From Botryllus schlosseri (lineage: Eukaryota), in assembly GCA_051294905.1 (NCBI GenBank), contig CM119376.1:26846001-26910000 (forward strand): a stretch of DNA of 64,000 nucleotides. Reading direction: 5' to 3'. Positions 12,534-63,997 of the stretch are shown one piece after another. A model generated the notes under the pieces. It was not told the origin of the DNA. It did no database searches and was given only the letters and a program-made list of their open reading frames with translations. Position 1 is the first letter of the stretch; each line of letters opens with the position of its first letter. The position numbers and the translations under genes are program-made.

Positions 12534-15500
12534 ATGAATCTGGGTATCTACCTGACGATAGGGCTACTTGTCCTTCACGGAGCACGAAGTCAACGGAAAA
12601 AGAAGGGTAGGTCTATGTATGAATTTTACTGAAATTTTGAAACTTTATACTCGACCCTCCATGACTCTTTTCTTGACTTATCAGTTCTTATCAGTAGCAA
12701 TTATTGCGCTTGCAGCCCCCTGGCATCGACGAAGATTGCTAATAGGCATATTGACTGACAATATATTTTGCATTCATCAGTATATATATATAGGCCTACT
12801 GTAGATTATTCGACACTATAGCTAGAAGTCGACAGGTATATTTGTGTTCATACGTTTAATTATCAAATTTCAATTCCTTATTTAAATACGCAATGTGACG
12901 GATATTGGGAATAATATTCGATATGCATTGGCGTTGGTCATATCAAGTGCCTGTTTGCCTCAACCATTCATGTTACTCGACTAAAAATCGTTGCATATTT
13001 AGATACAAATAGTATTATCTTAACATTACATAAAATCAAAAAACATGATCTGAAACATATTTTTTCAAACTTCTTAGATCGAACTGTCTGTTATTGGTGA
13101 TGTATTATTTTCATTGTTCTTTCAAGACTACATTCATTGCAGTATAACTGGGAGACTTCTCGTGTGTCCCCTATCAAGAGTCGAAGGTACAAAAGCAAGC
13201 ATATAAACAGGAAATCAATCGAAAACATATTTAGCAAAGTACGACGTAACAATTAAATTGTACAAACTGCGCCAGAGAACCTCAGCTGTAGCGGTAACTA
13301 AGCGGAGTCATAACAAGAAAAACGATTGAGAATCAAAGTATACAATATTACAAAACGCGGAAAACACGTGGACGGTCACATAACAGTATAGGCCTATTAC
13401 ATATTAGATACTGTATATTAGGTGAAATAGTTTAAGATGGTACAGGAACTCGTTCGGTCGGAATGAAACTGGATTATTTAACTAATTATAATAATCAACC
13501 GCGGATCCCAATGCAGATAAATGAAAGGCAGATCTGCCTTTGAATATCATAATTTTACTTGTAATTTCGTAAATGCGTATTTACAGTTTCACACACACCC
13601 GGTGTGTACGACAAATTCGCGCGTAACGCGCGTATCGGAATGTCCATGTCCAATTCGCACATTTACGACTTGCGATTATATGTGATATCCGCACGGTAAT
13701 TTATTGTGACAGCCAAGCGGGTGTATGTTCAATTGTTCACCAGTTCCCCATAATGTTCAAGAACGATGTAGATGATTTATAATAAGTGACACAACGGTCC
13801 CTATACTCCACTCCAGCTTCCTATGTCATAATATCACCATATTACGAGATCATATACATATAAATAGCAGGGAAGTCCAGTAACAAAGTAAGCTACTTCT
13901 ACTTTTCGGAGTATAGTCAAGTTGGTTTTGCCTCCTTACTCAAGTTTTTAGACTTACTTCCACTTAACAGCTTTTCATTGCAAAATACTTACTTTTACAC
14001 AAAGTAGAAAGTAGTTTGGGGATATGCTTGCGTCATTATTAGGAATGAAATTGTTATGACCACTTGGTTAAAGAGCCCCTTCATCATAGGTACATGAATA
14101 TATTTTTACTGACCGCACTCAGTTCATTCTGTGTTGGTCGCGAAGATGAATCCTGCCATTTCAAAAGCGGCCAATTCTGACTGATTAACCACTAAGGGCG
14201 GATTTCATAAAGTTGGATTATCGATGAAGTCGATTATCGTGTTCATCAGGATTTAACGACACAGGTTTAAGGAAAACGGTCAGCTAGTCAGCCTTCAGGA
14301 TTACCGGACCACGACCTAACATCATTTTGTCGCTTGCCTTTTATATTCTCTGCTTTACTTTTCATTCAGTGTTCAATGTGCATGCCTTTTGTCTACTTCG
14401 CCTAGGGCAATGTGGGTGTCTGATCTCGAGGACTACTCCAAGTTATTTCGATACCTTCCTATCTTTTCATTGTATCGCAGTTTTCTGGCGTTTGGAAACG
14501 ATGAAAATGTTGATAACTGATACTGATTTTTGGTATACAAGGGCGGTTGATCGCAGCGCATAGAGTTAGTTTTAATCTCATGATTTGAGAAACCGTAAAC
14601 AACAATAGATAACAGTCATCTATAAGAACTGCGTACACTGCGTAACGTTTCTACGCGCAAATATTTCCGACAATGACCGTGACGATTGTCTCCTGGGGAA
14701 TGACTTCACAAAACAAGCAGACAATCAACGAACCATGTACCCACCATGGCAGAGCTAAATATCTTTCAACACTCTATAATCCGCTTCTTCGCGGTACTTA
14801 CTGATTACGCACGAGTTTCATTTCGCGATGGTGATAATTCTACCTATAATAGTCGCAGTATCTTTATCAGCAGCCTGACGTTTCATTCAACCAAATTGAC
14901 AACTGACAGCCAAGACCGCATTTTCGCATTATGATGCAATAGAAAACGCCACCTAATTGAAAACTCGGACACCTGGAGTAATCATCGCGAGTAACCTTAT
15001 CCAACTATATGCGTAGCGATTACCAGTTTTCCATTACCATTACCATTCTCCCGGATCAGAAAACTTTATGATCTCCGCCTAAATTGCGTCCCGATTAGCA
15101 GTTTTTAATAATATGATTAGTATTCTCCCGGATCACCTAACTTTATGATCTCCGCCGTAAAAGTTTGCAACCCATAGAACAGTGGTTCCCAACGTGGGCG
15201 ATATCGCCCCCCAGGGGGCGATTTGACGGCCTAGGGAGGCGAAAATGACGAAGGGGGCGACAGGGGGGCGAAAATGGACAAAGGGGGCGACAGGGGGCGA
15301 AAATAGCGAAAGGGGCGATAGGGGGGCGATGAAGCGTTAAAACGGCTATATTGGAGTCAATTCAGAGAAATGACCTTTTTTTTAGTCAACCCACGGAAAT
15401 TTGGTTGCAAAAGTGTAAATTCGAGAACCAGCCGAAAAGTTGACCTTTTTTTAGTCAACCCGACGATGATTACAGATTGTATACCGATTTTTCGGATCAC

Positions 15501-18500
15501 AAAATCTGGGGGGCGATGATCGGCGTTGAGCTTGAAAAGGGGGCGATGAGTCGAAAAAGGTTGGGGACCACTGCCATAGAACAAATCTACATTTTGAAAC
15601 TGCTTGAGTATTCTTCATATCATAATTTTCTATTTGAAGTTGTTTTGCTATGTCTATATGTCGAAATTGCTACTTGCACTTCGAAATGTAATACAGCGGG
15701 TATACGGTAATTGTGGCAGGGAACGTGTGAAGGTTGTTGTTGTTATTATTTATTTTATGCGTGCTGAATTTAATAATCCCAACCAACTGCAACCAAATAT
15801 ATAATTTATAAAGAATATCTGTAATTGTTGAATGCAGGGTGTGATCAGACCAGTTGACCCGACCCAGAGTCATATTGATCACACCCTGTCCTTCACTGTT
15901 AAAGGGGCACTGCGTTCTAAAATTGATGTTGTCTAAAATTGAGTCGCAGACCGAAAAAAGAATTGACCGCAGCCAATGTTCCCTCGAAGCTGCGCACGTG
16001 CGCAGTGCTGACACGGTATCTGCGCACAGAAAATCTACGTTGCGCACAAAAAAATCAGAAGAGATGGCCTTTATTTAGTTGTTACGCACTGTTGTCCAAG
16101 GGTCTGCACAGTGAGTTGGTGAGTGTGCGCAGACTCGTCAAAAATTCGAGGGAACATTGACCGCAGCCATTTTCTTCAGAAAGCCCCCGTAATGGAGCTG
16201 GAATTAAATGAATTTTGTTTCTTGTTATTATTTCCTGCGTCAAAGTTATTTACTTTACGGTTGGACGAATCAATAAATCTCTTTCTCTCTCTCTCTCTCT
16301 CATGCTAGCTGTAATATTTGCAGCAAATTTACGGAAATTAAACCATCAGTGTCTCGTCATCTATACGATTCGAGTATACTTTGAATAAACGTTTAGTCGC
16401 GACCCAAATTTATATACCCTTCGCGGCCCATATACTTTGGGAAGCACTGCTCTAAAATATTATCTTTTGACAGGCTCCGCAAATTCTAAAGGTGGTAAAT
16501 TCATCCCTGGAAAAACGAGACTGTCATCTTCTTCATCTTTTAGCAATCCAAGATCGAGAGGGTGGGTGTCATTTTGTTCTAACAGCAAATTTACAAATCA
16601 ATAATTCATCACGACCTTTAAGATTGGATCTTGCTTCAATTGATGTTATTATGTTGATACCTAAAATAAGGAAATATTCAAATAGCACAATTGCTCTATG
16701 TCATATAATTAAAATGCCACTAATCAATTTCGATGAATACACGTACAATACGTGCAACAATACAATACAGTACAATACAATACACGTACAACACGTACGT
16801 TATCATTTCGCGACTCTCCAATGGGCTCTCTTCATAGCACCGTAATTTGGTCGCATGTGGTCGACTATGTCATAAGCTAAGCACATACAGATTTTCGTCA
16901 ATCAATTTCTGTATTTTTGGAATTCATAGCCCCACTCTCGGCGACGTGTTGCGAAGGAATGGTCAGCAAAACAACCCGAGACGAAATCCCACGAACCAAA
17001 ACCAAGGAGACTACAACGATCCTGACCCGAGGAATCGGTTAAATCACCTCACCAATATGAGAAATAACAAACGACAGAACGCTCAAAACAACAAGCCAAG
17101 CGCAGGAAACAACGCGGTTGTGCAATACCCGACCATCGGGAAAGTTATACCACCGCTCAAAAGGACGAACGGTGAAAAGCCACCATTTGCCCCGTCGTGT
17201 AAGTGTATATAGACCTGCATGAGGACAGTGAAAAGTATCATCTGGCCTTACCGGGTTAACATTGCTGAAACACGTATGACAGGGACTCACTGCGTCATAT
17301 CGGTTCAAGTCAGCATCGCTTGGGTGATAGTCACAAGTCCAGGATACCCGCAGAAGTTTCAAGGCCAAGTTCAATGCAGTTGGATGTAAGTTTGCATTAT
17401 ATCATACACAAGACACAAAAGTGGAGTTTATCCCTGTTTTCAAGCCTTGTTCTTCTCGACATGAATTTGTAAATTGTTCAATGTTCAAAGTTCATATTGT
17501 TCATATTGGCTTCCGACTCAAGAATCAGGAAGATATTGTTGGTGGCGCAATATAACACAACGTGACTTGCGCCAAAATCATTCTATAAGCTACCCGAGTA
17601 CAGCTAATGACGAGCAAGTGTTGTTTCAGAGCCACAGCGCCAGAAGGATATGGAATCCGAGTTTCGTTCAAAAAGCTCGATCTTCTGCCACCCAATGGCA
17701 AAGGATGCGGAAGCCAATTTGTCGAGATTATCGACATGACCCTGGAGAAATCTCAAGCCAGGTTCTGTGGCACGTATACTCCAGGTGACTACGTGTCAGA
17801 AGGTAAAGTTCATTACAGCTGTACTGCTAGGGCAGTGTTGACTGTTGAGCTTTCATGGATTTTTCTCGTACTCCATTATAAGACATGTTCATTGTTCATT
17901 TGTTCAAATCCCATCATATCATGCTGCAAGCTCTTAATCGCAGGAAACAAGCTACGCTTGGATTTGCAAGCTGATGCCATTGGCACGCCGTATACAGGCT
18001 TCATGGCTGCATTCAGAGCGGATCAGGAAATTGCAGGCCGAAGAGGTAAGATTTCATCACGTTTCGTAGACGACATCTGTAGCAACGATATTTTGTCCTT
18101 TCTTGCCATTTTCTTTCTTGCCATTGCCACTCGAAAGTTCAGAATAACCGTGTTCACGAGCATTGTGATATCGCAGATAGTATTTACGTAATTCTCTTCT
18201 TGTATGCGGTGAAATAAAAAGAAAATACAACCACCTACTTGCACAGGCTGTAGAAATAAACCGATTTCCCTTTAATGATATACAATATTATCAATTACTG
18301 GTATATTTCGAGTGATAGTTTTAGCCTCCAGCAAAATAAACTTCGTGACGGAACCGGACTAACCAGCCGGTCAATGATATCGAAACGATATTTCAGAATT
18401 ATATGTGATTTGTACGAGGTCTGTATAAACGTACACAAAATAGCTTGATGATTGGAAGTCTACCTGCTGGTTTATACTATAATATATAATAATCTTATTG

Positions 18501-21500
18501 AACAAAACCTTTGCAGAAACTAGCTACTTCGCAGACGGACAGCCTCAAGGCTTGTACAACCCTCTCACCGAAGCGTAAGTACAGTATATGTGCATTGTGC
18601 ATGTATGGATGACATTTTTGTGTAGTGTGAATGAACCTTTAAACTTTAAAGCATTAGATCAGCTGGAGCAGTGGGCAACTTCTCCAGTCGACGGGCCAGA
18701 TATAGGAAAATTAAGTACTTGGTGGGCCGGATTACTGAATCGATACATTATTCGCCCATTTATCCACATATACAAGGAATAAATCGTAATAATGAATGTA
18801 TTTTAACGACAGCAATGTCATTTCAAAGCCATTTCTCGCCGATAATGACGAATACAATGTGGATTTGAGAACAGCATTGTCGTACAGGCGCCGCCATGTC
18901 TGCTTCTCTCTGATCAGTTAACACACGGTGCAATCCACAATTAAGATTTCCAGGCGTTCGATAAGCCTGGTACCCTAAATTCACCAATATATCAATTCAT
19001 TCGGGTTGAGTACATGGGGTAAATTCCGATAATGCAAGCCTTCTCGTTACGACGAACTTACTCGTAAGTTCCACTCTCGCACGCTGCGCACATACGTATA
19101 TAAAACATTACAGTCACTAAAATTTGACGTTAAGCAAGTAGTGGGGAATCTTGGCAGACTGGGGCGGGAAACTGTCCGCGGGCCGTATGTTGCCCGCCCC
19201 TGAACTATTGAGTGCTGCTATTTTCATTAATTAGTTTGCTAAACCGACTGTATATAAGGACAGTGGTTTTCAGCATTGGAAATCCAAATAAATTGGCGCT
19301 GTAACTAGCAACAACCTATATTTGAACCCGAGGTAGTCATCATCTGTTATCATCTACCGCCAATCAAAGGATCAAATGTTCTCAGGAACGCTGAGTGGGT
19401 CCCGTACACATGTCATCTTGAAAAACGTTCCGTGACCAATTTTGGGTAGGAGCAACTCAGGAAATCATCCAAATTTGTGATCAAAATTTTGGTTTATACT
19501 GCATTCGTCTTTTGATGTTTCACCATCATAAATTTGTTGTATATTCAACGAAAAGATTGGTACTTATCCCATATTGGCCTATTTCACCACGATCAATACC
19601 ATAGAGCACGACACAGTGGAACAAAAGAAAAATAAATCAAGAGGGGGTTGTTCAGGGGTCATTGAGCAGGCTGGAAATGATTTTTATAATTGATTACAGT
19701 TATCGATAAGGAAACGAAACGATGGGCGTCATATTCCGCGTATAAACATAGAAAGGAATTAAGACATCGGTATAGATAATAAGTGACTGATATTCAACCT
19801 CCCATTTTAAGACCGCCATCAAACCCCCAGAGGGGAGTGCAGCGAACTAACCGTAAACCAGCAACCGCAAAACCTAAAGTGAATGCTGGTGCTGGCATCA
19901 GTGGGCAAAGGATATACGGAGTAAAAGACCAACCAAGATATCAAGGTTCGGTCAAGCGTTATAACCGTCGCCACGGCTGTAGTTGAAGTCATCTACTATT
20001 TAGATGACGGGAAGAAAGAAAAAGAGGAGGAGCCGCTGACGTCATCAACGACCCATCTTTATATCATAATTGCTGTTATTCTGGTGATTCTAGTAGCGGC
20101 AGGATCAACTTATGTTTTCAAACGGTAAATTACATACGATCATGGAGATTCGTAACCATTTTTAGTTAGCGTTAATGAGCATGCATGCAGTCGCACTCAT
20201 CATCATTATTGTATTATATTATTTGTCGATTCACGACAGGAATTGCAAATACAATGAAAAGAAAGGAAATATAGTTGGAACTACTTGGTGAAATCAATCA
20301 ATCAAACCCCCACCTTGGTCAACAAATACATAATTACTAGGGCGATTTTTTTGACATGTCATAATTTGTCAAAATTTTGTCAAAATAGTAGCGTTAGGCC
20401 AAAATTTGTCAAAATCGTTTACAAAGTCAAAATGTTTTTGACCTCTGCATTTCGTTTGTATCGTAGATTTTGCACTGTCGGTGAACTTATCATTTGATAT
20501 TTACAGCTTGTAGCCTACTTTATAAGCAACCGTTGTAGTCGGTCCATGTGTCTGCCCATTGTGAATCATAAAAGGTCAAATGAAACAAATAGGTTGACAT
20601 GGTGTTATGGTCAACGTATACCGTAATATCCTAACTGAAGCAAGACTGCTTGGGCATTGCATGGTTCTTATATCAAGAAGCGCATGATGTAGTGCACGCA
20701 CAACTTCAGTGTTGTCAGTCAACAACTGCTGCTGTTGAACGTTCTCTATTATTGGGAAGCTACTTATTAAGGACAGACACTTTCTACCCGAGAATGAAGT
20801 AAAGTATCTTTCGTTGTACTACAACAAATTTTAATTATTTCTACCCAGAGGTGGTCAGTAACGAAGTACTTCTACTTTTTGAAGTACTTGAAGTAGATTT
20901 TGCCTACTCAAACTACTTTTTAAGTAGTTATGGTTTTGACTACTTCTACTTCTACTTGACAGTTTTCAGTTTTGTAGGCAAAAATAAGCCCAGAATATCT
21001 ACTTACTTACTTACTTGTGAACCACCACTCCTACTTCTACTTGAGTAGAAATCCCGGCGTTACTTCTACTTCTACTTGAGTAGCGAGGGTGACTACTTTG
21101 ACCACCTCTGTTTCTACCATATTACGTGATATAACTACTGGAATATTTCATAGGGCCAGATTTCGTTAAAATACTTGTTTTTTCATGAACAAATTTGTCA
21201 GCTCTTTAGCCAAAAACGTTTTTTCAGGCCAAACTACTTCGTAAGGACAAACAGTTCTAACTAGAAATGAAGATAAGTAGTACAATTTCAACATTATGTG
21301 CGAAAACACCTAATTTCCATACGTGACGTCAAAATTTGGTGAAAATTCAGTTTTTTAGGTAAAAATCTTCCGTTGTTTAGGTAAAAATAAATAAATACGT
21401 ATATATTAAAACATATGGAATAATATTATGAAATGAGGCATACAGGCTCTACGAGATATAGCCTATACACTACATAATTATCAACAAATAGACAGAAAAA

Positions 21501-24312
21501 AGCGGCATACCATACTATATACGTGGTAGAGGCGAAGTCGGTAGGTTAGTATATATAGGATGATTATTCTGTCGAACGACGAAGGTTCAAACAGTCAAGT
21601 TTCCAATTAAGGCATCCTAAGAATAATTAGTGGACCGTAACTGCCGCACCCCAAACCCCCCAATTGTGGTGGGGGCGAGCTCGAAGGGGGCCCCAGATTA
21701 TTTCGTGAATTAGCATTAATTATAGAGTATTATTTGGAAATTTATGCAAATTTTTCAAGTTGCCAAATATCTTGATTATTTGGTACTCTTCCCCCAAGAA
21801 AAAACACGCAAGATTTATAGAAGTGGACATATCGGCATTGGCCATTACCACGCCACTACGCACCAAGATATAAAACGATTTAAGACATATTACATGCGAC
21901 TCCAAGAAGTGTGCCAGAACGATCGGCAGCGCGAAAAGCTTGGCCGAAAAGGACTGCTCTTAATAGGTTTAATTGTCCATAGGCGCCTAAATGACTGGCG
22001 CCATATGTTCCTGTCTTGGCAATCAGAACCTCAGAAGACAAATACCATCCCGCAGGAAAAAAATATATGCCAGTGAAGAAATACCAATTTGAAATCGTGT
22101 GCGTCTTTAGTTAAGTACGTTTGAGCGATTCTATATTTTTGATATAGCGCCCGCCCAAAGATGTTTAATTATTATTTACGGGCCCTACAGTTTCCGGTAA
22201 ATCTGATAACGCGAGCAGAGAGGACAAGAAATTGATAGCAATATATATGCAATTCCCGATCTTATTGACCGATTGCATCATGAATTATCGAGAATTTTCG
22301 CGCTTCGCGCTGGCTCACTAAACAGTGCAGCTAATTTCGTGGCAAAAGCGAACACTGTGATGAGAGGGTCGGTTTATCGCCCCATGGAAGCCCAAGACTC
22401 AAGTTTCTTGGGGGGCCTGACGAAGCGCTGTTTCGTTCCTGCCAACGGGTGTACGCCCGAAGATGTTTAATTATTATTGGGTGGTCATACGTTTTCAAAC
22501 ACACCTCGCTCAGCTTTACCGGTAAATCTGATTACGTGAGCAGAGAGAGGATCAAAATTGATAGCAATATATATGTAATTCCCGATCATATGGACCGATT
22601 CAATCATGATTTACTGAATTTTTTCGCGCCTGGCGCGTCCAGGCGGGAAAAGCTGACTCACCAAACTAACACTCAATGCAGATGTCAAATAGCGGCAAAA
22701 GGCGGATAGCCAAAGGGGACCCCAGAAGTTCGGTGTATCACCCTATGGGGGGCCCAAAGCCAACGTTTTTTTTGGGGGGGGGCTGACGAAGCGCTGTTAC
22801 GGCCCTGCATGTCACTATAGCATACAATCATTGTATGGCCTGAGTGATTTAGATTTCTTATGGAGGTAAGATCATTAATCGGGTCACCAGCGCAATAAAG
22901 ATCTTTCCATATTATTTTACCTGTTAGCCTATACTTTTGTATTCATATCGCCCTGTATTGATCATTCCCAATTCGAGTTCTACGATTCAGGTACTTTTAC
23001 AAACAAGCTAAAATATGGTGGAAGAAACGGAAGAATCAGAACGGCAGTCAGTTACCGAAACCTGTCGAAGACAATTACTCCATGAAGAAAATGCAACTGC
23101 CCGGGACAATTCCCTTGCCTCCTACGCCGAATCGAGAACCTTCCATTCACAGCGGTTTGTCAAGTGTATATACTATGTGGCGCATATAGCGGGATGATAA
23201 TCCTGACTCTGACCAGGCAGATGCAAAAAAAACAATTTTAGACTAATACCCGACTGAAATACCCGTTATTAAGCGATGACTGAATGTTTAGATGACGACT
23301 ATCCTGATATGTTCGGTACATACCCATACCCGCACCCACCATCGTATGGTCGAGCGACACGCCATCAATTGTCTCGATCCAATAGTATGGATGATGTAAA
23401 CATGGGCTGGAATCGGTGAGTGTATCCAGTGATGCACCATTTGATAACAATAATGCTAATAAGAATAGTCGTATAGGCAATCGTACGATGCAAAGTTTGT
23501 AGATATTTTATCCTACACCACACCACTTAATACCGTACGATTAACAATTAACCGTATAGTTATCCTATCTTTCCAGCGACCCAATATACGAAGACGATCA
23601 GCTATCTCTACACTCCGTCGCATCATCTCTGCGCTCGGCGAACAGACATCCGGACCACGAAAGGCTCAAACATCAGAAGTTACTGGAGCGTCAAAACTCA
23701 CTGCACATGCTCAGAAGAAGCTTCGGTTCTGATTACGACCCGTATACCATGGACCAATCGATCTACCCTGTCTACAACCCATACAGAAGCAGCGGCTATT
23801 ACCAAATGTACGGATACAGACCGGATGATGTGTACGGATCGTTGCCTGCCACGTTTGGACCAGGCCGATCCAACGCTTATGATTTCCACGACGATCAATT
23901 CATCGGGCTGAAATCACCGCGTCAGTTATATACGTCTTCCACGACTGATATCCCGGGTAACATGGCGAATCACAACGATTTCATGATGCAGCAGTACCGC
24001 GGCCGCTCTGCATCAGTGTACGACTTGACTACAGCGAGCATTCCGCAGCAATACGGTAGCGTCGGTAGCGCGTCCAATCCACCTGCTTTAAATCAGCGTC
24101 ATCCGTCTGTGACGTCATCAACAAACAATTCTTCCACTTCGACCAATCCCATACTAAAGAAAACCACTCCGGTACACCAAAACGAGCTCGCTTTCAGCGC
24201 GCTAAGAGCCGCTAAAAGCATGAATGACTTGACTGCTATAAACACGAAGTTGAATGAGAGCGTTTCGTGGACTCTGCCGCCCCAAAGGCGGAAAAGTGTG
24301 GCTCAATTATGA
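12534..24312 (+). CDS. CUB-domain type I transmembrane protein, paralog A (Tyr-rich tail)
   Basis: Signal-peptide exon from ATG 12534 (MNLGIYLTIGLLVLHGARSQRKKKG); its link to the next exon is unresolved. Then phase-consistent exons 16930-17198, 17283-17385, 17630-17802, 17944-18045, 18517-18574, 19812-19945, 20004-20124 (TM: LYIIIAVILVILVAAGSTYVF), 22991-23154, 23292-23415, 23577-24312. CUB: WTHC..VTSPGYP..QCSWIATAPEGYGIRVSF..GCGSQFVEI..RFCG..GNKLRLDLQAD..TGFMAAF. Confidence 0.85.
15180..15573. mobile_element. hAT-type MITE with internal GGGGGCGA repeats; related copy 26551-26938
   Basis: TIRs CAGTGGTTCCCAAC / GTTGGGGACCACTG; perfect TSD CCATAGAA. Confidence 0.9.
15974..16159. mobile_element. 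hAT-type MITE
   Basis: TIRs CAATGTTCCCTCGAA / TTCGAGGGAACATTG; perfect TSD ACCGCAGC. Confidence 0.9.
20340..20840. repeat. Dispersed repeat; inverted homolog at ~37915-38440
   Basis: TTTGTCAAAATTTTGTCAAAA...GTCGGTGAACTTATCATTTG...TTTCGTTGTACTACAACAAATTT is the approximate reverse complement of 37915-38440. Boundaries are approximate. Confidence 0.75.
20846..21110. mobile_element. MITE of a CTACTT-rich family (TIR CAGAGGTGGTCA)
   Basis: TIRs CAGAGGTGGTCA / TGACCACCTCTG; perfect TSD TTTCTACC. Confidence 0.92.
22150..22800. repeat. Tandem duplication of a ~300-bp unit inside a repeat
   Basis: AAGATGTTTAATTATTATT...CCGGTAAATCTGAT...AAATTGATAGCAATATATATG..ATTCCCGATC occurs twice (~22160 and ~22460). 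Confidence 0.8.
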
Positions 24313-24352
24313 TGTGTTATATCGTGGTATATAAGCGTGCAAAAGTACTGTC

Positions 24353-24358
24353 AATAAA
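24353..24358 (+). terminator. Polyadenylation signal of CUB paralog A
   Basis: AATAAA ~40 nt after the stop codon at 24312. Confidence 0.6.
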
Positions 24359-50271: not shown

Positions 50272-53200
50272 TTATGCTGCCGGGAGATCTCTCTTTTTGC
50301 GCGATAGCGTCTGTTCGTCGGGTTTGCTGCTTTCTTTGTGTCGCGCGCGTTGTTTGTCCGCCTGTTTCGCAGTTTTAGTCTTGTCGTGCCCGGTTGGTTT
50401 GGCGCTTTTCCGCCGCGATGTGGATTTCAAGGTTTTGGATCCGTTGACCCGTTTTTCTCTCTTTCTGTGTCGTTTCGGATCACCGGTTTGCGAATCTCTG
50501 ACTTTCGCTGTCTTCTTCTTTCGCGCTGTCGAATCGTGTCTCGTTTTTTTGTCTGCTCTGGATGAAGGTGTTGCCACCTCATCGCTGATCGTCTTTTTTG
50601 AGTCTGACTCCTTTGCGACTCCGTCGACATCTTTATCTCGCTTGCGCGATTTTTCACGTTTTTTACCGCGACTGTGCGACGGGTCCTTTCTGCGTCGAGG
50701 CTTACGAATGGGCGGACGGTCGTCTATCGTGTTCCTGTTTTCGTCAATAGTTTCCCGCGTTCCGTCTGGATTTTTTTCAGTTTTGGAAGGTTTAGGTTTG
50801 CGTGTCTTCCTCGGCGCTCTTCCAGCTGGGGTGTCGTCTACGATTGTTTCGTTTGCACTTTTGTCCACCGCGATTGGTTTCTTTTCCCGCTTCCGACGAG
50901 ATGACTTTTTGGGTTTTACTTGTCCATTCGTGTGTCGCTTGTCGTCATGTCTTTTGCCCTCCTTTGGCGTCCTGGTCTCTCTGATGGGTTTTGATTTTAC
51001 TTGATGATAATCAGCTGCTCGTTCTGGTTTGGATGAGGATCTGGGTAGTTTTCCATCTGTGAAAACAAGTGTAGAGTGTTATTTTCGTGATCGATTAGGA
51101 AGAATTCGATTCTAGTTGCTGACGATTACCCCGGTCACCCTTGCCAGCCAAAAATATCCGGTTTCATTTCAATATCAATATTTTTTACAATTGTATTCCG
51201 AAGTTCTGTACCTCCAACACAGCCTTCAAATAGATGTATCAGCAACTATACAAGGTCAATGGGCACCTGTAGCGTATTGGGCGCCATTACGACGGACAAT
51301 GCTTACCGAGTAACATATTTATTTAAAATTACCTGGTAAATCTTTCTTTTGGGACATGCCGTTGTCGGAGTGATTCTTTCGATAAAGCGGTTTTTCGATA
51401 ACGAATCCTGGCAGCATGGGTGACTGTAATTGGACATCAGGGTCAGGGTTACTTCGAATTGAATAGGTATATCAATAAGTATTGATATATCAGTAAGGAT
51501 GTTGGGGTGTTTGCCCTGCACGTACATTAAATTTATTTTCTCCAAAATTCCATTCACTCTGTTCCAGATACTCCTGTTCTTTTTTATCATCGATGCACTT
51601 CCTAAAAGAGAAAGGCAAGGTCAAAATCGATATTCAATTAGGATTCGACCACTCGAATTGGTATCCCCAGCCCTAACTATGATATGCTGTTGTATGAGAG
51701 AAGCGGTGAATCCGCTATACCAGGGGTGTCAAACTCAAATTACGTCGCGGGCCGGATGCAGGACGGCTAAGACTTACATTTCATTGTAAATCCGAAGAAT
51801 AGTAAGTCAACACGTTATTGGTATTTCGTCTATCAGTTCTGATACTTGGAAAATAGGGTCAAAAAGTGTTGAAACTGAGGAAAATTAACGATATTATTAA
51901 TGCGAGCCACTCTATATCACTCGAGCAGAGTGGAAAAGTGGGTTGAACCGGGTTGAACCGGATTGAACTCAAAAATGAACGGTGAGCACAATGACTTGTA
52001 TTCGGACTCGAGTCACAACGATATGACTCGAACTCGACCCGCCACTCACTGACTTGAACTCGGACACGACTCGCTGGTGAATCAAGCATGTAAAGAAACA
52101 GACAACGTATCACGGACCATATAGGCGATAGGGGTTTTATTCGCGAATAATGGAATTGGTTAAAATACGATGATTGGCCAGTTGAATATATTTATGAACC
52201 GCTAAAACAAAGGCGGTAACGACGATATAAGTCGGCATATTTATATGCTGCCTTTGCTTTAGCCGCAAAATGGCGTTTGACATGTGTGTGCGACTGTGCG
52301 TTGCGAGGGATACAAGAGATTCAAATGTAAACGCGGACGTTGGAATTTGGTTCACTATATATTAAACGATATAGACGTCACTGTACGCAGTGATGGAGAA
52401 AAGGTTTTATCGCTTGATATAGGCGGGGCCATTATAATGCCATTTAGCTTTTATCACATAGAGAAAAATGTGTTACCTCTTGATGAACACTCCCACCATA
52501 CAGGCCACCAAGGCGGAAGCAACAAAGACTATGATCGCGATTTGCCACACTGTAAGTGAGCTACCACCTTCGTCATTTTGCTCTCCGTCAACATCTGGCG
52601 GGTCATCTGCATATAAACATTTGAAAATTGGTCATAAAACCACGTAATTGCTAATTACAGAAGTTACTCACTTGCCCCGGGTTGATTTCCTGCCCCGTAC
52701 AGAACTTTTTCTCTGTCAGACAGCGACACGTCGATCTTAGACCCCACCGTATTCTTTACTTTGTTCCTACAATACGTCAAATGGAGACTGTCAGGCCAGG
52801 TATATAATTAACATCGCCATATTGTATTGCATAGATCAGCTCATGCCAGTATCGAATATTTAAATTAAGGATTGGGAAAATAATGCGAATAAATGTTAGT
52901 AACTTTAAGAATTGTAGACATTATAGCATGCCGATACCGAAAAGATCTTACTTCAGGTCCGGGTTCTTTGTTACTGATCTTCTGAAATGATAGGACAAGA
53001 TCAAATTTGAATTAATAATCAAATTAATAAATTAATCATTAAAAGTATAAAAATGCCTAAAAAAAATTAAAACCATAATTCAAAGTAAAAATAAAAGTTG
53101 GATTGTTAAGACAAAAAGAATTGTATACTTCAATTAATGACATACACCGTAAACAAAAATCGACTATTTCTCCGATGTGGTTTTGCCGATGGATTAGATA

Positions 53201-56200
53201 CATCAATACGCATATGTACCAAGGATGGAGAGGGTTCTTGTTTTCGGTTACCACCCAGCGAGTGCCCAAAAAGTTGGTGCACATACAGAATCCACTACAG
53301 CCCTAAGTATTGGCGATATATCTATAGACTTCCTCATCGCCACGGGATCCGCGTAAGCGATGTCTTACGAAAGCCTAGAAGTGAGCCGTGCTACAAGTCG
53401 GTAAATTCGGAATCATAATAAAGAATATCAGCATGGTGTAAAATGGTCAATGTATAGTCGAAACACCATAAAAATCAAAACAACTACAACTCACTGAAGC
53501 CATGTGATAAGGATTGGTGTGTTTGGATCGTGTTCAACCATTGGAATGGGTGTAAAGGAAAAGCAAAATTTAGTACCTATTTGCAGTCTATACGCTATGG
53601 TGGAGATCTGGTGATTTTCGATGCATGAAATGGCCGACCAGCAGCGAAAGATAGCGTGGTAGTTGATCTATGGTTAGAATCCACACTACCAATCATCCCT
53701 CAATTTGGCAACGCATTCCCGACATATATACTTTTATCATGTCATGCGCTGACGAACAAAAATGTCCTGCCCTGCCTTGCCTATAGGCCCGGTACAACAA
53801 CAATTAAATCTTTCGATGGTCGTAGATCCAGTAATAGTCCGAGATTATCTTCATGTTTCCCACAACCTCATTGCAACTCTTGTTTATGATGTTACTAATA
53901 TTCGCGGTTGATTACCAATAAGTGCTATTCACGTTACGGCCTAGCGTAGTACCGGAAGCCCGGCGGTTCTTTAACGACTTTGTAACTGATAATAAATGGC
54001 CTCTCTTCTTCCCGCAATTTCGTCACCAACGGCTCCGAACCTTGGATGTCGATTCTGACTTTTTGTCCTGGCAAAAAAAGTTCAACTCTAGACCGATCAT
54101 ATTTAAAAACGACAATGGAAAGTGAATTGTAAATGATATGCATATATGCCTGCTTTACGTTTCGAATTAATAATGATGTGCATGAAGATGTTTCAGCATG
54201 AGACATGGAGTGGAAGCTTTATAACTTTTTTGGAGAAGTTTTTTTATAGGCATATTTCAGTTATCATTTCATATCCAAGACCACAAGTTATTAAAGTAAA
54301 TTTTCACTTTGGAACAGGGGTCGTCAGGTCACATCTGCAACAAAAGTTAAATCCATCCAATCTTGGAACCAACCTGCCGACACGTAATCCCCGTGCTTTT
54401 TATTCCCACACAGTCTGCCTTGGGACTTGCCTGCTCTTATGTCAATCAGCTGCAAAATGAAATCGCCAACTGTAGGAACACGTGCTTTGAGTGTAGGCAT
54501 TCGGATTTTGAAATTATATATTCAATATAATAGGCCACGTCACCTTACACTGTGGTCGGAAAAGATATGTAGTTTCGTTAAGTGAATGCAAAACCCGATG
54601 TCCGATATTATCTTTGCACAGGGTGCAAAGGACCATACGTTCTTCGGCTTACCTCAAGAAACTGCTGCGTACATCCACTCCCGGTTTGCACACCGAAGTC
54701 TAGTTTCTCGAAAGCGATTTTAATGTTTGAATTGGGTATATCTGACGAAATGCTGAAATGATACATATATATCCTTAGTTAAAATTAAATATCTAAATAA
54801 GCACAAGAAACGTATATTTAGTTTAGCAGACATCATCAATAATAATAATGAATCGCTATACAATGAATAGTAGAAAAGTTGCATCACCGCGGAATCCCTC
54901 AGTCAATGAGCGATAATGACCATTTTCAGTCGAATGAGAATGAGTAGTTAGTTTCCGGAGGCGCTCCGTAACGAAGTTCTACTTTTTCGGAGTATTCAAG
55001 TAGTTCTCGCCTACTTGCACTACTTAATCTACAACTACTACTTAAGTATTGGTGTTTTCAGACAGCAGCCACTTCTACTTGAACAGTTCTTCAGTAGAAA
55101 GTAGTTTGTATCAGTTTTACGGATGAAATTGAGAATAGAATTGCGTGACATAGCCCATGTAACACGGTAACAGAATGTATTTTCGAATCTTGCAGCTATT
55201 GGAAGCGTCCCCAGTCAATTTACTTTAATCGCGAAGATGAAAGTAAGTTTCGTCGCGACGATTCCTCTGTCAAATATACTTTTCAACTACGTATACTTTC
55301 CATAGAGCTATTTTCTTCTTCCACTTGAAGTAGTTGTGACATATGTTGAAAATTGCTATAGTTCGACTTTTAATCGGGTAGAAATTCGTGGTGTCACTTT
55401 TACTTCCACTTAGTGGCAATCGTGACTTTTGGCCACCTCTGTTAGTTTTATGGAAATACATGAATTGACAGGCCAGCTTTGCAGCGTGGAAACGGATAAT
55501 TAAATAAAGGAACTGTAATTGATGTCTAGGTTATTGACGAAGGACATTTTGGTAGCGGTTCTTCCGAAGGTTACCAAACCGCTCATGACGTACGTTTCTT
55601 GTCGTCTCGACATCTGGAACGTTCTAGGAACGGTAATTATTTCAATCTTATCCAAATGCATTCCCTTCATTCGTCAACTGAGCATCATTTACGGTGTCAC
55701 TAGTACGACATGTGTCTGCTTATACACTTTTTATGGCCATCAAGGTCTGTGGACTCGCATATAGGGTGAAAAGTATTGGAAAAATAAACACATAAAACGG
55801 TTACAAGCGCATACAACTCATGTATTGTTAAAGGAAAGTGTTTATTATATATATATTCCACTTACTACCACGAGCATTGGAACTGAGTTGCCTGAATTTT
55901 ATGGAGGTTAACGGCGCTCTTTATCGTTCGCCAGGACACAGAAGCAGTCAAATACTTGATACAGTGAGTCCCTGTAAAAGGCACAAATTAAACGGTGAAT
56001 ACGCAATAAAACCGTAGTTGGGACACGGCACTCCGCCGAAATCATTGATAACTTTGTATCTATCATCAACCGTAATAATATGAGCGGACTGAACATCGCC
56101 GTTGACCGCTGGTCTAAAATTCCTTTGCCAGACACAGTGCAAAAGTGGATAAATTTCGCGAATAGTAAAGAAGCCATGACACATGACCTCGATACCACAT

Positions 56201-59200: not shown

Positions 59201-62200
59201 AATATGTCGTCTTGGAACTGGTTTTGTTCACAAGATGCCCCCAGGATCTAAAATATTGGTCGCCGCGAGCCTATCGGGTAATCGGAAGCGATCGGATAAT
59301 AATTACAAGTATTCAGTTTAAATGGCATAGTAGCCCGCGATCAAGGATCTATTTCCTTCCCTGTTTAACAATGTGAGTATAAATTGGAACGATACCGAAT
59401 TACTAATTTAATGAATTCAACCATCTGTGTTGTACAATCTACTCTTAAGTGACGTAAAGCGCATACTTGAATTGCCACCTGATATGAGAATAGCCTATAA
59501 TAAGGCCAATGCCCACCATCAATCCATCATACGTGTAGTGCGGACAGCGAGTCTATGGAAAGCGACAACCTGCGATGTGGGTCGCATCAACGCATGTTGG
59601 GGATTCAGCTTTCCGCCCAATTCGTAACGTTACTATTCGCATACGCATACGTCATATTTTGTGATACGATTGTTGATATACAATGTTCTTTACAATTCTC
59701 TACTAGTTGCTGACGATTACCCCTGACGAGGCTCAGCCGAAAATATTCGGGTTCATTTCAATATGAATATACTATTCAATTGTATATTGAGCTCTGTACC
59801 TCCAAGAAGCTCTTGTAATGTACAGTGTCCAATCGTATATTTCGAGCACTGGCATTCAAATTAAAAAACTCTATGAGCGTTTGCACGTTGACATTGTCCA
59901 TTTCCTATCCAACGATGCAATATACAGGCTTCCTTGCTAGATCTCTATACACTCACAGCCGGGATCGTGGTATTTCTGTTCTCCTTTCTTCACAGTAACG
60001 GGTGGAATGATTATTGGAAGGTCTCCAACTGAACAAAAACGAAAAGAGGAGTTAAAACGCACATGCTGCACAGCATTTTGAATTATGAGCACTGATTCAG
60101 AAATACGTCTCGGAACCAGAGGTGGTCAGAGTAGTCAAGAAAGCTCCTCAAGTAGAAGTAGAAGTACTTCTTTCATAAGCAACCTAAAACTACTTGTAGT
60201 AGAAGTAGAATTGACTGACTTTAGGTCTACTCAAGTAAGTAAGTATGAAAACGATCGCATTTCGTTCGTATGGAATGTCAAAAGCTGCAAATGGAGCTAT
60301 GCGGAAGGTGTAGAGAGCTTGATTCATATTGATGCATCCCAGGAGGTGCTAATTTTTGACAGAATAAGCAGTCGTCCACATCATGGCCCATGGAATGTAA
60401 ATGATGGTATTGATATGGAAATGCGATACTCTTCCTTTGTTTACTCGAACACCCGTTATAGAGAATATCATGGCATGGCGCCCTACCCCATACTATAACG
60501 TCCCTAGTTCAGTCGAAGAGCTATACGGAGAAGTTGTGTCGGATAAGGCTTTAACACTTCGCGTGATTAGTATACGTTAATTAAAAATATGACAGATCGT
60601 AAAAATGCTATACAGTGTATAGCTTTTTTTCGGAAAATGTAAGGCATTGCTGCACTTGCTTTTATACTTCCACATGTATGTTCTCCAGACAAAAGAAATG
60701 AAACTATAATAAGAACTCAAGGTATAATACTCGTAATTGAAAGAAAAATACCAGATTAGGACACGTCATGGACTGCTAGATATAATAGGTATGTGCTAGA
60801 TTGAAATATTTGATATAGGTGACAATGCGGTGTGAACGGAACCACGCAACCCGGTATCTAAATTATATTTAGCGCTACTTTCGTTAAACATATTTGTCAC
60901 TCCATATCTATTGTGCGCGATGCGCAACGAAAATTCTGGGTATTACATGAAAACTAAATGTTGGTACTACGTGAAAACAGCCCCGAAATTCCTTGGGCTA
61001 TCTTTCTTATTGCGGGATTAAACTACTTCTCCTTGACAAACTGAAAATAGCGAAAAGTAAGTTAGTAGTTCACAAAATATTACGAAGTAGAAGTAGCGTA
61101 AAAAACATATCTACTTGAGTAAGTACCAGAAGTTGAGTAAAACTACTTGAGTACTTCGAAAAAGTAGAAGTACTTCGTTGCTGACCACCTCTGGTCGGAA
61201 CAGACACGGGAATCGAATGCAATATGTCGCATTGAATGGTTACTATACTCAATCGAGTAGTAGATTAGCCGTTATCCGGATTGGCTTCTATATTTAGAGA
61301 CCGCGAATTAGTCAATGTTTGTGGTTTAACTGCGTTCCTGGTGATGCCACGTTAAAACAGCGACCTAGATCTACCATTGAAGTCGATTTGATATCAGACG
61401 ATCTAAAGATCAGGCGTCAGTATTGGATTGAATTGTATGGAGTATAGTCAACAACAATTTTTTCTTTAACTTGTTTCACAAAAGTTTTGTCGACACAATG
61501 TTATCGCATGACATGCGAGACACTTTTCGGCTCATTCTATGAAACCCAAAGTCTTGTTAATCAGTAGAAACGAAATATTCATCAATCGCGTTCGTCATCT
61601 GGATGTTGATATGAATTCAACCTGCAACATGCGACCGACCGACCACGACCACTGCCCACCGAGGTTAGTGTTAGACATACGATTCAGTGGTGAGATAGCG
61701 TAGCGATATGATCCACACCTGTAACACCAAAGGGCTGCGGGTTCGAGCACGACTGGGGTCTACTCCAGAATTCCTGCCCAAGCGTTTGAGGTTTACCTAG
61801 GCTCCTCTTCCACGTGATCCGCGTAAGCGGAATCTTATAAAAAGCCTGGAAGTGGGCCGTGCTAAAAGTCGGTAAATACGGAATGAAAAATAAAAAGAGT
61901 ATCGACCTATAGTGTAAAATGATCAATGTAGTCGAAACACCATGAATATCAAACAAACAAATAAACGATTCAAATTCCACTGTTGGCTGATAATTACTTT
62001 TACGCCGCTTCGAGTGCGAGGTTTTCTTTGCAATGTTTCTACAGACAACTATACGGTAGACTCCGCTTAATTGGAACACTTTGATCTCGCTGACTTTGGC
62101 CTAAATAAGCGGAAACGTGGCTTTGTCTTAATTAGCCGGAACTTCAATTGTTCGTTACATATGGTCTGGTCATACGCAGGGCTGCATTTAAAACAAGAAT

Positions 62201-63997
62201 CAATTTAAAACAAATATTTTTAAAACAAAGCCCTAATTTAAAACATGTTTTTTTTTTCTTTTTCTCAAGTCATGACGTCACAAATAATCAATTGTGACGT
62301 AATAGTGGATTGACATCGACAATTGAAAAGATAGGTTAAATATAGCTCCTTTGACGAAATACCACTATTAATGTTGAACCGACTATTTTGAGGGTTCCAA
62401 CCATCCCATATCGATATACTTCGGCTATATCGGTTGGTAATTGTCCATAGGCTCATACAACATGTTTTTTGGAAAGTATCTACACAATTATGGCATACAA
62501 CTTTTGAAAAAAACAATTTTTTAAATTGCTTTTGTTTAAAACACTGTTTAAAACAAGTGTTTTAAAACACCGTTTGTTGTAAATGTAACCCTAGTCCTAT
62601 GCAAAGGCAGACAGTGCATTGAAAATACCGTCGTGATGTGTACTTAATGAATTAATTGCAGCTGCTCTATAATGGAGTAACTGGCACTGACCGCGTAAAG
62701 CGAACCGTCAGGTTAATTGTATTGTACAGTACTATCTCGATAGGCCTATACCAAACGATTTAAGAATTAATATCTACTATATTGTCGTTACACTAACACT
62801 GTTGCCCTACCTCGCCCAGACATTGCTTCATTGATAATTTGCTACCATTGTTTAATTTTTTTCTACTTTCCTTTCCTAACTAAACATTTTTTTACAGCCA
62901 GACTGTTCTGAGTCAAGTGTACCTGTTTGATGCTGGTGTGATCAGACTAGATGACCTTCACGGTCTTATCGATCATTCCTATCTAATACCGAATACTGTG
63001 CACGCATATTTTCTGTACCACATTCACTGCCGTTTGTCATGTATTTTGGTTCGATGAAAATAAAGACTCTCTCTCTCTCTCTCTATTTACTATATTACTG
63101 TGTAAAACACTCGGAATTAAAATAGTACAGTTATTCTTCAACGGCGGAAGGACCATTTTCACCTGATAAAATTACTCCACGAAACAGTAGGAAATTATAA
63201 AAGCAAAAAGCTTTTATCTAAGGGGTAAACTTTTCTGTGCCATTCTGTTCCACAAGACGGACGTAATTATACCGAAGCAAAAGGGACTATATAAGGCTGG
63301 CACGGCCGCATTTTTAATAATAACTTTTTAATGATTAGGAGAACGTTAATGTTACCGGAGCACTTTCGCGGTGGAATCAAAGTATCTTATGTTCATTTTT
63401 CAAACTTTGAGATCCATTTTTCAAATTTATAGAAAATCAAGTTTTTCTGAAACTTTCATTTTTTCTGTGATATCTTGGCTATGTTTATGTTTTTCTCATT
63501 GTTTCGAAGATATGACCAAAAGAAAATGAAAACTTTGCTAAAGGTAATTTCATCAAAATATGTAAAATGGGCATAACTTAGTATGATTCCACAGCGACGA
63601 TATATACTATATATTTTTATGAACTCGACGTAACTCTTGCAACCATGAAAATTATCAACCTGTATATTTAACGTATCTCATCACAGCCGTTCAATAAAAG
63701 ACGAAAAGGCGAATAAGGCGATAAAAATAACATAGTATGAGTGTGCGGACAAAGTATAAGACACACATGCGAGTCGCAAAGTCGGCATTAGTTGTCGAAA
63801 GGTCGTCCTATATGTCCCAAAAATCTCCGTCGCAAAGCCGCAAGTCTCGAACATATCAATAGTTACTCACTTTTAACTGATTCTCGTCTGCTTCTTATGG
63901 TCATCGAGTCGCATAATGACGTGAGATAAACGAATAATGTTATCGAGAAGAAGTAAACTTTGCGGTGACATAACTTACGCATCCCAACCGTGCCCAT
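50272..63997 (-). CDS. CUB-domain type I transmembrane protein, paralog C (Lys/Arg-rich tail)
   Basis: Exons 63997(or 63982)-63871 (signal peptide MRKLCHRKVYFFSITLFVYLTSLCDS), 60028-59957, 55971-55866, 54752-54653, 54449-54374, 54067-53938, 52766-52672, 52606-52477 (TM: VWQIAIIVFVASALVACMVGVFI), 51601-51526, 51423-51333, 51056-50272; all phases join. CUB: WTHC..QCSWYISSDIPNSNIKIAFEKLDF..GCTQQFLELID..RLCG..GQKVRIDIQG..PFIISY. The frame is open at the window edge, so a further upstream start is possible. Confidence 0.87.
53250..53490 (+). mobile_element. 5'-eroded SINE copy (family of 61684-61965)
   Basis: GATCCGCGTAAGCG...GCCGTGCTACAAGTCGGTAAAT...GTGTAAAATGGTCAATGTA..GTCGAAACACCAT matches ~61810-61950. 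Confidence 0.75.
54956..55441. mobile_element. CTACTT-family element
   Basis: Decayed left TIR, right end TGGCCACCTCTG; TSD TTAGTTTC / TTAGTTTT. Confidence 0.75.
57167..58087. mobile_element. hAT-type non-autonomous element
   Basis: CAGTGGTCCGCAAAC / GTTTGAGAACCACTG; perfect TSD GATTAAAA. Confidence 0.85.
58584..58941. mobile_element. hAT-type MITE (TAGGCTTACCATA)
   Basis: TAGGCTTACCATA / TATGGTAAGCCTA; perfect TSD CCGTATGA. Confidence 0.92.
59650..59815. repeat. Dispersed repeat family (core CTACTAGTTGCTGACGATTACCCC); fragments also at 1-72, ~370-395, ~500-690, ~30200-30305, ~51110-51215
   Basis: Recurrent GCTGACGATTACCCC...ATATTCGGGTT(C/T)ATTTCAATATGAATAT...TTCTGTACCTCCAAGAA in both orientations. 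Confidence 0.8.
60117..61193. mobile_element. 1.08-kb CTACTT-family element (uninterrupted homolog of 29203-31809)
   Basis: TIRs CAGAGGTGGTCAG / CTGACCACCTCTG; TSD CTCGGAAC / GTCGGAAC. Confidence 0.9.
61684..61965 (+). mobile_element. tRNA-derived SINE with a (CAAA)n tail
   Basis: A-box-like GATAGCGTAGCG, B-box GGTTCGAGC, body shared with 53250-53490, tail CAAACAAACAAATAAAC. Confidence 0.7.
62177..62593. mobile_element. MITE (TAGGGTTGCATTTAAAAC family)
   Basis: CAGGGCTGCATTTAAAAC / GTAAATGTAACCCTA; body is the inverse of 33017-33420. Confidence 0.8.
63366..63599. mobile_element. Short TIR element; second, interrupted copy at ~400-860
   Basis: CGCGGTGGAATCAAAGTA / TATGATTCCACAGCG; internal TTTTGAGATCCATT and AAGAAAATGAAAAC shared with 410-860. 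Confidence 0.7.

Follow-up and report, generated by a model that had tools for sequence, protein, structure and literature searches.

We examined a 64,000-nt stretch of the Botryllus schlosseri genome (the window throughout; about 40% GC, no assembly gaps) containing three neighboring genes, here called A, B and C, that are predicted to encode related surface proteins with one CUB domain each. Gene A is on the plus strand (12534-24312, 12 exons, 720 aa), while genes B (40505-28627, 11 exons, 569 aa) and C (63997-50272, 11 exons, 590 aa) are on the minus strand. Each model is a complete open reading frame (ORF) with GT..AG at every intron. The genes consist of many small exons and are rich in introns, and the ORF track misses them, just as a preliminary description of this DNA had remarked in noting that the track holds only fragments of them. 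Stop-to-stop frames were used to locate motifs, and the exon chains were then rebuilt by hand from splice sites and phases.

The three proteins follow a common plan, consisting of a hydrophobic N-terminal signal peptide, a linker, a P-x-W-x-H-C motif (PSWTHC in A, PAWKHC in B, PGWTHC in C), one CUB domain, a stalk, a transmembrane helix and a tail. Within the CUB domain all three have QCSW and a DYVS loop (DYVSEG, DYVSFG and DYVSAG in A, B and C, respectively), and the stalk, which is basic or proline-rich, bears an (I/L)YG motif (RIYGV, VIYGA, VLYGA). Four ectodomain cysteines fall at the CUB positions, with one extra cysteine near the end of the signal peptide in C. Each protein has a single strong transmembrane helix (Kyte-Doolittle 2.7-3.0) followed by a basic stop-transfer stretch. 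Over the region from PxW to the end of the CUB, pairwise identity among A, B and C is 38-45% in a MAFFT alignment.

On the same alignment we compared intron positions among the three window genes, and four coincide in both position and phase: a phase-1 intron inside the W codon of the PxWxHC motif, a phase-2 intron directly after CSW, a phase-1 intron after DYVSx-G, and a transmembrane exon with a phase-1 boundary at its start and a phase-2 boundary at its end. The CUB of B and that of C are each interrupted by a further phase-0 intron, the two lying about ten codons from one another. The preliminary description had listed this architecture and these shared introns, and we found all of them where it had placed them. 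Judging by these sequence features, A, B and C are three real neighboring genes for predicted single-pass type I surface proteins with one CUB each.

Evidence of transcription is strongest for gene A; RNA mapping of the exon chains had been proposed beforehand as a check. We aligned contig sets of three studies and the raw reads of a 2026 RNA-seq run to positions 17150-23149 and observed seven GT..AG joints (17198>17283, 17385>17630, 17802>17944, 18045>18517, 18574>19812, 19945>20004 and 20124>22991). One RNA contig of 1911 nt spans exon 3 through the first tail exon, and the share of sampled words of 17200-18100 that is present in the RNA runs, about 40%, matches the exon fraction there. The RNA joints bear out the chain of exons proposed for A in the preliminary description and correct it in three places, namely the micro-exon at 18517-18574, the start of the stalk exon at 19812 and the start of the transmembrane exon at 20004; a further exon to be added to that chain, at 16474-16561, was revealed by tblastn. 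For gene C, the RNA runs contain 0.19-0.20 of the words of 50000-56000, against roughly 0.26-0.30 expected from its exons, which is weakly compatible with transcription.

Could the models be chance ORF fragments or pseudogenes stitched together? Exons 1, 2, 9 and 10 of C, together with the first exons of A and B, were placed from sequence alone or from weak similarity, which is a point in its favor. The complete ORFs and canonical splice sites speak against it, however, as does the exon-by-exon alignment of orthologs (Table 1). A family hidden Markov model (HMM) built only from sequences of other species matches A, B and C end to end with 190, 197 and 135 bits, respectively. The spliced RNA contigs refute the artefact for gene A, and for the locus as a whole we regard it as extremely improbable.

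Table 1. Exons of genes A, B and C in the window, with the evidence for each.
Gene	Exon	Positions	Strand	Content and phase	Evidence
A	1	12534-12606	+	start codon, signal peptide (MNLGIYLTIGLLVLHGARSQ...), donor phase 1	sequence; signal peptide-then-basic layout as in S. clava P0039
A	2	16474-16561	+	SANSKGGKFIPGKTR..., phase 1->2	tblastn S. clava P0039, 65% identity over 16491-16559
A	3	16930-17198	+	N/Q-rich linker ending P-S-W, phase-1 intron in W codon	tblastn; donor by RNA joint 17198>17283
A	4	17283-17385	+	(W)THC...QCSW, CUB start, phase 1->2	RNA joints both sides; partial Pfam CUB match, profile 11-29
A	5	17630-17802	+	mid-CUB to DYVSE(G), phase 2->1	RNA joints; Pfam CUB profile 33-88
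A	6	17944-18045	+	CUB end (NKLRLDLQADA...GFMAAFRA), phase 1->1	RNA joints
A	7	18517-18574	+	58-nt micro-exon (ETSYFADGQPQGLYNPLTE), phase 1->2	RNA joints 18045>18517, 18574>19812; 65% identity to P0039
A	8	19812-19945	+	stalk with GQRIYGVKDQP, phase 2->1	RNA joints
A	9	20004-20124	+	transmembrane exon (IIIAVILVILVAAGSTYVF), phase 1->2, after 58-nt intron	RNA joints 19945>20004, 20124>22991; 71% identity to P0039
A	10	22991-23154	+	juxtamembrane tail with LPG motif	acceptor by RNA; donor inferred from sequence
A	11	23274-23415	+	tail	tblastn P0039, 50% identity; splice sites from sequence
A	12	23577-24312	+	tail with DPIYEDD and RHPDH, to stop codon	tblastn P0039, 56% identity, E 4e-72
B	1	40421-40505	-	start codon, signal peptide, ends D-P-A-W, phase-1 intron	sequence; weak tblastn match to P0028
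B	2	40217-40322	-	(W)KHC...QCSW, phase 1->2	tblastn of P0028 and P0026
B	3	39958-40081	-	mid-CUB to ...KVGHSM, phase 2->0	tblastn; partial Pfam CUB match
B	4	39271-39316	-	GKFCGDKRPGDYVSF(G), phase 0->1	tblastn, 81% identity
B	5	39020-39121	-	CUB end, phase 1->1	tblastn, 78-84% identity
B	6	37291-37450	-	K/P-rich stalk, phase 1->2	tblastn P0028, 50% identity
B	7	37006-37187	-	stalk with RPVIYGANAN, phase 2->1	tblastn P0028, 53% identity
B	8	35870-35984	-	transmembrane exon, phase 1->2	tblastn P0028, 75% identity
B	9	35217-35358	-	juxtamembrane tail (CVCDKSKRKK...VPG...)	tblastn, 48% identity
B	10	32535-32680	-	tail	tblastn P0028, 40% identity; exon revealed by tblastn
B	11	28627-29128	-	R/S-rich tail with PPPPY and DFDEGY, ends ...RKYSY, then stop	tblastn P0028 45% (E 5e-30), P0026 39%
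C	1	63871-63997	-	start codon and signal peptide, donor phase 1	sequence only
C	2	59957-60028	-	ends H-D-P-G-W, phase-1 intron	sequence only
C	3	55866-55971	-	(W)THC...QCSW, phase 1->2	tblastn P0030, 73% identity over exon end
C	4	54653-54752	-	mid-CUB to ...QQFLE, phase 2->0	tblastn P0030, 56% identity
C	5	54374-54449	-	LIDIRAGKSQGRLCG...DYVSA(G), phase 0->1	tblastn P0030, 63% identity
C	6	53953-54067	-	CUB end to ...EPPGFR, phase 1->2	tblastn P0030, 66% identity
C	7	52672-52766	-	stalk with EKVLYGAGNQP, phase 2->1	tblastn P0030, 43% identity
C	8	52477-52606	-	transmembrane exon, phase 1->2	tblastn P0030, 45% identity
C	9	51526-51601	-	juxtamembrane tail (KCIDDKKEQEYLEQ...), donor tentative	sequence and resemblance to MIFDKKKKEEYLNLE in P0030
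C	10	51333-51423	-	SPMLPGFVIEK... (LPG motif), acceptor tentative	sequence; same motif in P0030
C	11	50272-51056	-	long K/R-rich tail to stop codon	open frame, strong acceptor; only low-complexity similarity to P0030

The same stretches of DNA hold some further features. In gene B, 37187 could also be joined directly from an alternative phase-2 donor at 39016; the K/P-rich stalk exon (37450-37291) would then be skipped with the frame kept, and an alternative isoform is possible. Parts of the A introns (18550-19350 and 20350-22950) show a summed RNA-contig depth of thousands to tens of thousands, with numerous loose ends and anomalous joints; in this they resemble abundant, transcribed repeats or transposons rather than part of gene A. 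Two ORFs similar to each other, at 60085-60495 (plus strand, in an intron of C) and 31417-31670 (minus strand, in an intron of B), both contain ...SCK...EGVESL.HIDASQEV.IFDRISSRPHH... and have no Pfam matches; the two probably belong to a single repeat family.

We considered the domain content of the relatives. Pfam (CUB model PF00431, cut-off 21.4 bits) finds one CUB in each of nine relatives, scoring 41-60 bits in eight of the nine and 24 bits in P0030, which is truncated. No further domain passes its cut-off in any of them; there is no LDLa, LCCL or discoidin module and no second CUB. Single exons of the window give partial, colinear matches of 13-18 bits, while the orthologs that score 24-60 bits are 66-89% identical to the window genes in the CUB region. 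A structure predicted with AlphaFold2 for a B-type ectodomain that is 89% identical to window B has a mean predicted local distance difference test (pLDDT) of 85, a predicted template-modeling score (pTM) of 0.80, and a CUB fold. Its template-modeling score by target is about 0.8 to the CUBs of TSG-6, neuropilin, C1r, MASP, PCPE and cubilin (0.79-0.84 to TSG-6, neuropilin and C1r), and the best fold match in the PDB is the TSG-6 CUB, at 0.81. A fold search of Swiss-Prot with the same model returned generic CUB matches, led by LRP12, whose first CUB is 33% identical over 113 residues. The predicted fold is a CUB beta-sandwich with two disulfides, C1-C2 and C3-C4. In two D-type sequences from marine metatranscriptomes (P0016 and P0022; the subtypes are described below), both Cys1 and Cys2 are replaced (HC by QV or SV, QCSW by QASW) while the second pair is kept, and this joint loss fits a C1-C2 disulfide.

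CUB domains of the C1r/C1s, MASP, cubilin and NETO type carry an acidic triad that holds Ca2+ and captures a basic residue of the ligand. We take this triad to be the Glu in ..LE.., the Asp in C.YDY.. and the Asp in ..SD.S... Against cubilin CUB5, the E of "hlE" is aligned to L and the D of "nDyle" to Q, and across the family alignment the Glu column is L, T, G or A and the first Asp column is Q, A, N or S; the third Asp (in RxDxxxD) is the only one kept. With two of the three acidic ligands replaced, classical Ca2+-mediated capture of a basic ligand residue appears unlikely for this family.

An exhaustive HMMER search of 1.84 billion representative proteins, with the two open CUB exons of A as the query, gave only 34 matches at E<=1e-3. 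The close ones are single-CUB proteins of 450-740 aa with the same plan, and all those that carry a species name are from tunicates (Styela clava, Ciona intestinalis, C. savignyi and Clavelina lepadiformis); further close matches are unnamed marine metatranscriptome contigs. Two distant matches whose sources we looked up, P0004 and P0021, are multi-CUB proteins of molluscs with roughly 30-35% identity. All of the named close matches are labeled "uncharacterized protein" or "CUB domain-containing protein", and two fragments of the family have the misleading automatic names "TSG-6-like" and "tolloid-like protein 1".

Each window gene has its own ortholog in S. clava: LOC120339409 for A (XP_077972435.1, 738 aa, 82% CUB identity), LOC120339728 for B (XP_077972436.1, 599 aa, in the same clade at a path distance of 0.31), and LOC120339432 for C (XP_039263491.1, a partial model of 317 aa, 66% CUB identity). 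These have the same architecture and the same tail motifs as A, B and C, although they are predicted proteins of a different species. Further A-type sequences are C. intestinalis LOC100175759 and C. lepadiformis LOC143460388, and further B-type sequences are C. intestinalis F7B206 and C. savignyi H2ZE97. Two more subtypes have no member in the window: D (C. intestinalis LOC100178074, C. lepadiformis LOC143460283) and E (C. intestinalis LOC100180211, S. clava LOC120328460). The A-, D- and E-type relatives have one CUB, one transmembrane helix and a long tail, and are about 33-40% identical to the B-type reference from PxW to the end of the CUB. Relatives in Ciona, Clavelina and S. clava share a signature of PxW, CSW, SQ(F/Y)V, (K/S)SQG, DYVS and RxDxxxD...GF, and 14 sequences of the five subtypes agree without exception in the P and W of PxW, the tryptophan of CSW and the V-S of DYVS. 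We define the family by P-x-W before the CUB, CSW, DYVS, a single CUB, a YGxxxQP-like stalk motif, one transmembrane helix and an LPG in the proximal tail; A, B and C have all of these, except that the stalk motif of B is a variant without Q-P.

We inferred a maximum-likelihood tree from the PxW-to-CUB region, using eleven CUBs of multi-CUB or multi-domain proteins (including tolloid-like) as the outgroup. In it the family forms one clade apart from the outgroup CUBs (SH-aLRT 99). Window A groups with S. clava A (99), window B falls inside the B clade (98), and window C groups with S. clava C (100). The A-like sequences of Ciona and Clavelina group together (93), but the tree does not settle their position next to the pair of window A and S. 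clava A, and their assignment to A was made mainly because of shared tail motifs. On S. clava OZ123520.1 the orthologs of A and B stand side by side in convergent orientation, at a distance of about 5 kb, which is the layout of A(+) and B(-) in the window. The C ortholog is not within 10 kb upstream of the B ortholog in S. clava, and no B-type gene lies within 10 kb of the A-type gene at the Ciona locus (AP043571.1). As each gene has its own ortholog in the tree and A and B are syntenic in S. clava, the duplications predate the split of these ascidians; at least those that gave A, B, D and E probably predate the split of Ciona and Styela. The sequences fall into at least five apparently ancient subtypes (A to E) within one clade that is apart from the multi-CUB outgroup.

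The C. intestinalis locus has peculiarities of its own. An apparent tandem second copy of the 3' half of the A-type gene (AP043571.1, 1-2778 and 10001-13947) is 87-100% identical to P0050, and the A-type gene is currently annotated as two separate products, of 192 aa ("TSG-6-like") and 273 aa. Existing annotations split or mislabel some members of the family ("TSG-6-like", "tolloid-like"), and the exon chains presented here could improve them.

The preliminary description had read the three genes as a locally expanded, lineage-specific family. The second half of this appears to hold, at the level of the tunicates, while the local expansion, of the kind seen at allorecognition, immune or gamete-recognition loci, is not supported, given the separate orthologs and the synteny of A and B. 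It had also named beforehand, as an outcome that would refute it, a failure of the three CUBs to group with one another in a tree; they do not so group, as each pairs with an ortholog from another ascidian.

We nonetheless considered whether the genes could be a recent local expansion under diversifying selection, in which CUB modules for allorecognition, immune or gamete recognition are coupled to different intracellular outputs. Three adjacent paralogs with unrelated tails would suit such a cluster, and so would the host, as tunicates have well-known allorecognition and self-sterility systems. Comparison of the reference with the RNA contigs and reads also shows four nonsynonymous variants, along with four synonymous ones, in the stalk exon of A (19812-19945). 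In the CUB exon of A (17630-17802), however, all four variants are synonymous, and in this small sample from gene A the pattern is the opposite of that of a hypervariable recognition domain. There is a one-to-one ortholog in S. clava for each gene, with the A/B pair syntenic there; Ciona, too, has A, B, D and E as distinct subtypes; CUB identity to orthologs is 66-89%; and the tails of A and B are conserved between species. The phrase "CUB domain" is absent from the Botryllus and allorecognition papers examined, including the main ones on fuhc and fester. The old duplications, the conserved tails of A and B and the synonymous CUB variants of A all argue against a cluster of the allorecognition or gamete-recognition type, which we disfavor as very improbable, and the locus is not an allorecognition candidate to pursue without population data.

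The tails of A, B and C are unrelated to one another, in agreement with the contrast drawn in the preliminary description between similar ectodomains and divergent tails. Between species, the last exon of A is 56% identical to that of its S. clava ortholog (E 4e-72), and (D/E)PIY(E/S) and RHP(D/E)H are present in all six A-type tails, Ciona and Clavelina included. The last exon of B is 39-45% identical to its orthologs; the three B-type sequences all have PPxY and DFDEGY and all end in an R/K-rich ...RKYS(Y/Q). The tail of C is K/R-rich and poorly conserved. Two short motifs near the membrane recur across subtypes: an extracellular Y-G-x-x-x-Q-P some 20-30 residues before it in A, C and D (B has a variant), and (L/M/V)PG about 25-60 residues past it, which is common across subtypes. 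Pfam finds nothing significant in the tails. A weak, sub-threshold match to HEXIM in the basic tail of B was regarded as compositional.

How widely the family extends beyond tunicates was also approached with word-index searches. The full-length Clavelina A-type query returned only itself (8000 candidates, low-complexity words) in a search that missed known family members, and in an insensitive search its CUB region retrieved, besides itself, just two tolloid-like proteins and two CUB proteins of 397 aa without a name. The S. clava A tail had no relative at E<=1e-3 in the same kind of search, which missed known members. We found no mention in the literature of six LOC identifiers of family members, and nothing on the family under CUB and ascidian terms. 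A search for characterized orthologs, suggested beforehand, found orthologs in tunicates only, all uncharacterized, and no well-characterized family. As far as we found, the family is apparently undescribed in the literature, yet already present in public databases as predicted proteins.

Based on the available evidence, we think it likely that A, B and C are real genes and anciently duplicated members of an old, conserved family that has so far been found only in tunicates. Some points weigh against this picture and against what we build on it. The chains of B and C rest on tblastn, in which orthologs of other species match the same exons in order, and exons 1, 2, 9 and 10 of C were placed from the sequence. 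The restriction to tunicates comes from a 91-residue CUB query and the insensitive word-index search, and a distant vertebrate or amphioxus counterpart may exist. The reading of tail motifs as phosphotyrosine-docking or WW-binding sites is pattern-based, and short motifs in disordered tails are often non-functional.

A stronger version is that this is an undescribed receptor family truly confined to tunicates and divided into at least five ancient subtypes, representing a signaling or co-receptor system that arose in the vertebrates' sister group; tunicates are the closest living relatives of vertebrates. Its defining new conserved elements would be PxWxHC, a CUB with a DYVS loop and no Ca2+ site, YGxxxQP, LPG, PIYE/RHPDH and PPxY/DFDEGY. 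We hold this to be a reasonable possibility, to which we would not yet commit ourselves. If the family is absent or unrecognizable elsewhere, a conserved receptor family of several subtypes would be a lineage-specific addition to the cell-communication toolkit of tunicates.

As to function, A, B, C and their relatives are most likely conserved receptors or co-receptors, as predicted from their sequences. They would act at the cell surface, where the lone CUB would bind an extracellular protein partner, presumably without the classical Ca2+/acidic-triad site, given that two of its three acidic residues are replaced. The tail of each subtype would recruit its own cytoplasmic partners through linear motifs: the tail of A may offer a tyrosine-based docking site, the PPxY of B may be a site for WW domains (of a Nedd4-type ligase) that drives ubiquitination and endocytosis, while the tail of C is highly basic. 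The juxtamembrane LPG might serve one common partner or sorting step. Taken as a whole, this mechanism is a tentative proposal that may well be wrong in part. The Ciona A-type gene LOC100175759 and the short conserved motifs offer testable handles in a tractable model.

Some neighboring loci in the window are recognizable as well. A DSS1/SEM1 gene and a SAM-domain exon lie upstream of genes A, B and C. The former is an open frame on the minus strand (9737-9949) for a homolog of the DSS1/SEM1 proteasome subunit (Pfam PF05160, E 3e-20). The latter is a large minus-strand exon (8535-9287) whose end encodes a SAM domain (Pfam SAM_1, E 4e-12), before which is a CxxC...FCxxxC stretch that we take to resemble the FCS-type zinc finger of polyhomeotic/SCM-like Polycomb proteins. 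An ORF on the plus strand (4167-4787) matches the end of RVT_1 weakly, at a sub-threshold E of 0.006, and is probably a remnant of a non-LTR (long terminal repeat) retrotransposon.

Among known proteins, the spermadhesins and the CUB_C of TSG-6 have, like the window genes, a single CUB of the same fold, but they are secreted and have no transmembrane helix or tail. DCBLD1/2 (ESDN) and LRP12/LRP3 are type I receptors with the CUB first and a long, motif-rich tail. It is conceivable that the genes described here are domain-reduced tunicate descendants of such a vertebrate multi-domain receptor, that is, diverged orthologs and no separate family, and tunicates are known for loss of genes and domains. 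The top feature-based neighbor is a DCBLD1 cluster (score 0.89, 165 shared features), and the first CUB of LRP12 is the best Swiss-Prot fold match, as noted above. Both matches, however, are below the stated reliability of the tools and amount to ordinary CUB-to-CUB similarity (31-33% identity, confined to the CUB, with unrelated tails), and the CUBs of cubilin, PCPE, TSG-6 and neuropilin score equally well or better. DCBLD proteins combine the CUB with LCCL and discoidin (FA58C) modules, and LRP proteins have LDLa repeats and a second CUB, while the Pfam search of family members found none of these; the resemblance to DCBLD1/2 is one of language-model features only. The A tail has no relative at E<=1e-3 in the word-index search, and the family is a clade of its own against the eleven outgroup CUBs, a tree that did not include those of DCBLD and LRP12. 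We consider this origin unlikely and prefer a separate family.

NETO1/2 of vertebrates and SOL-1 and LEV-10 of C. elegans are likewise of type I and cross the membrane once, between a CUB ectodomain and a regulatory tail, and they suggest a more specific role, that of auxiliary subunits which bind the ectodomain of an ion channel or receptor and tune its trafficking and gating. In favor of this role are the same general plan, the presence of the NETO2 cluster among the nearest protein-language-model neighbors (score 0.88, a lead only), and the presence of NETO2 among the sequence and fold matches in the PDB. The NETO2 match is weak, however (E 8e-6 versus 4e-37 for cubilin), and sequence similarity to NETO-type proteins is weak in general. 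The known proteins have from two to five CUBs each, with an LDLa module besides in NETO and LEV-10, while a lone CUB is all that the window genes have; nor are the residues of the acidic Ca2+ site conserved in the window family. A strict counterpart of NETO, SOL-1 or LEV-10 is improbable on this evidence, if slightly less so than descent from DCBLD or LRP12, and our preferred reading is still that of a family of single-CUB receptors or co-receptors. Nevertheless, the plan of CUB, transmembrane helix and tail that this family has in common with NETO, SOL-1 and LEV-10 makes a comparable mode of action possible.

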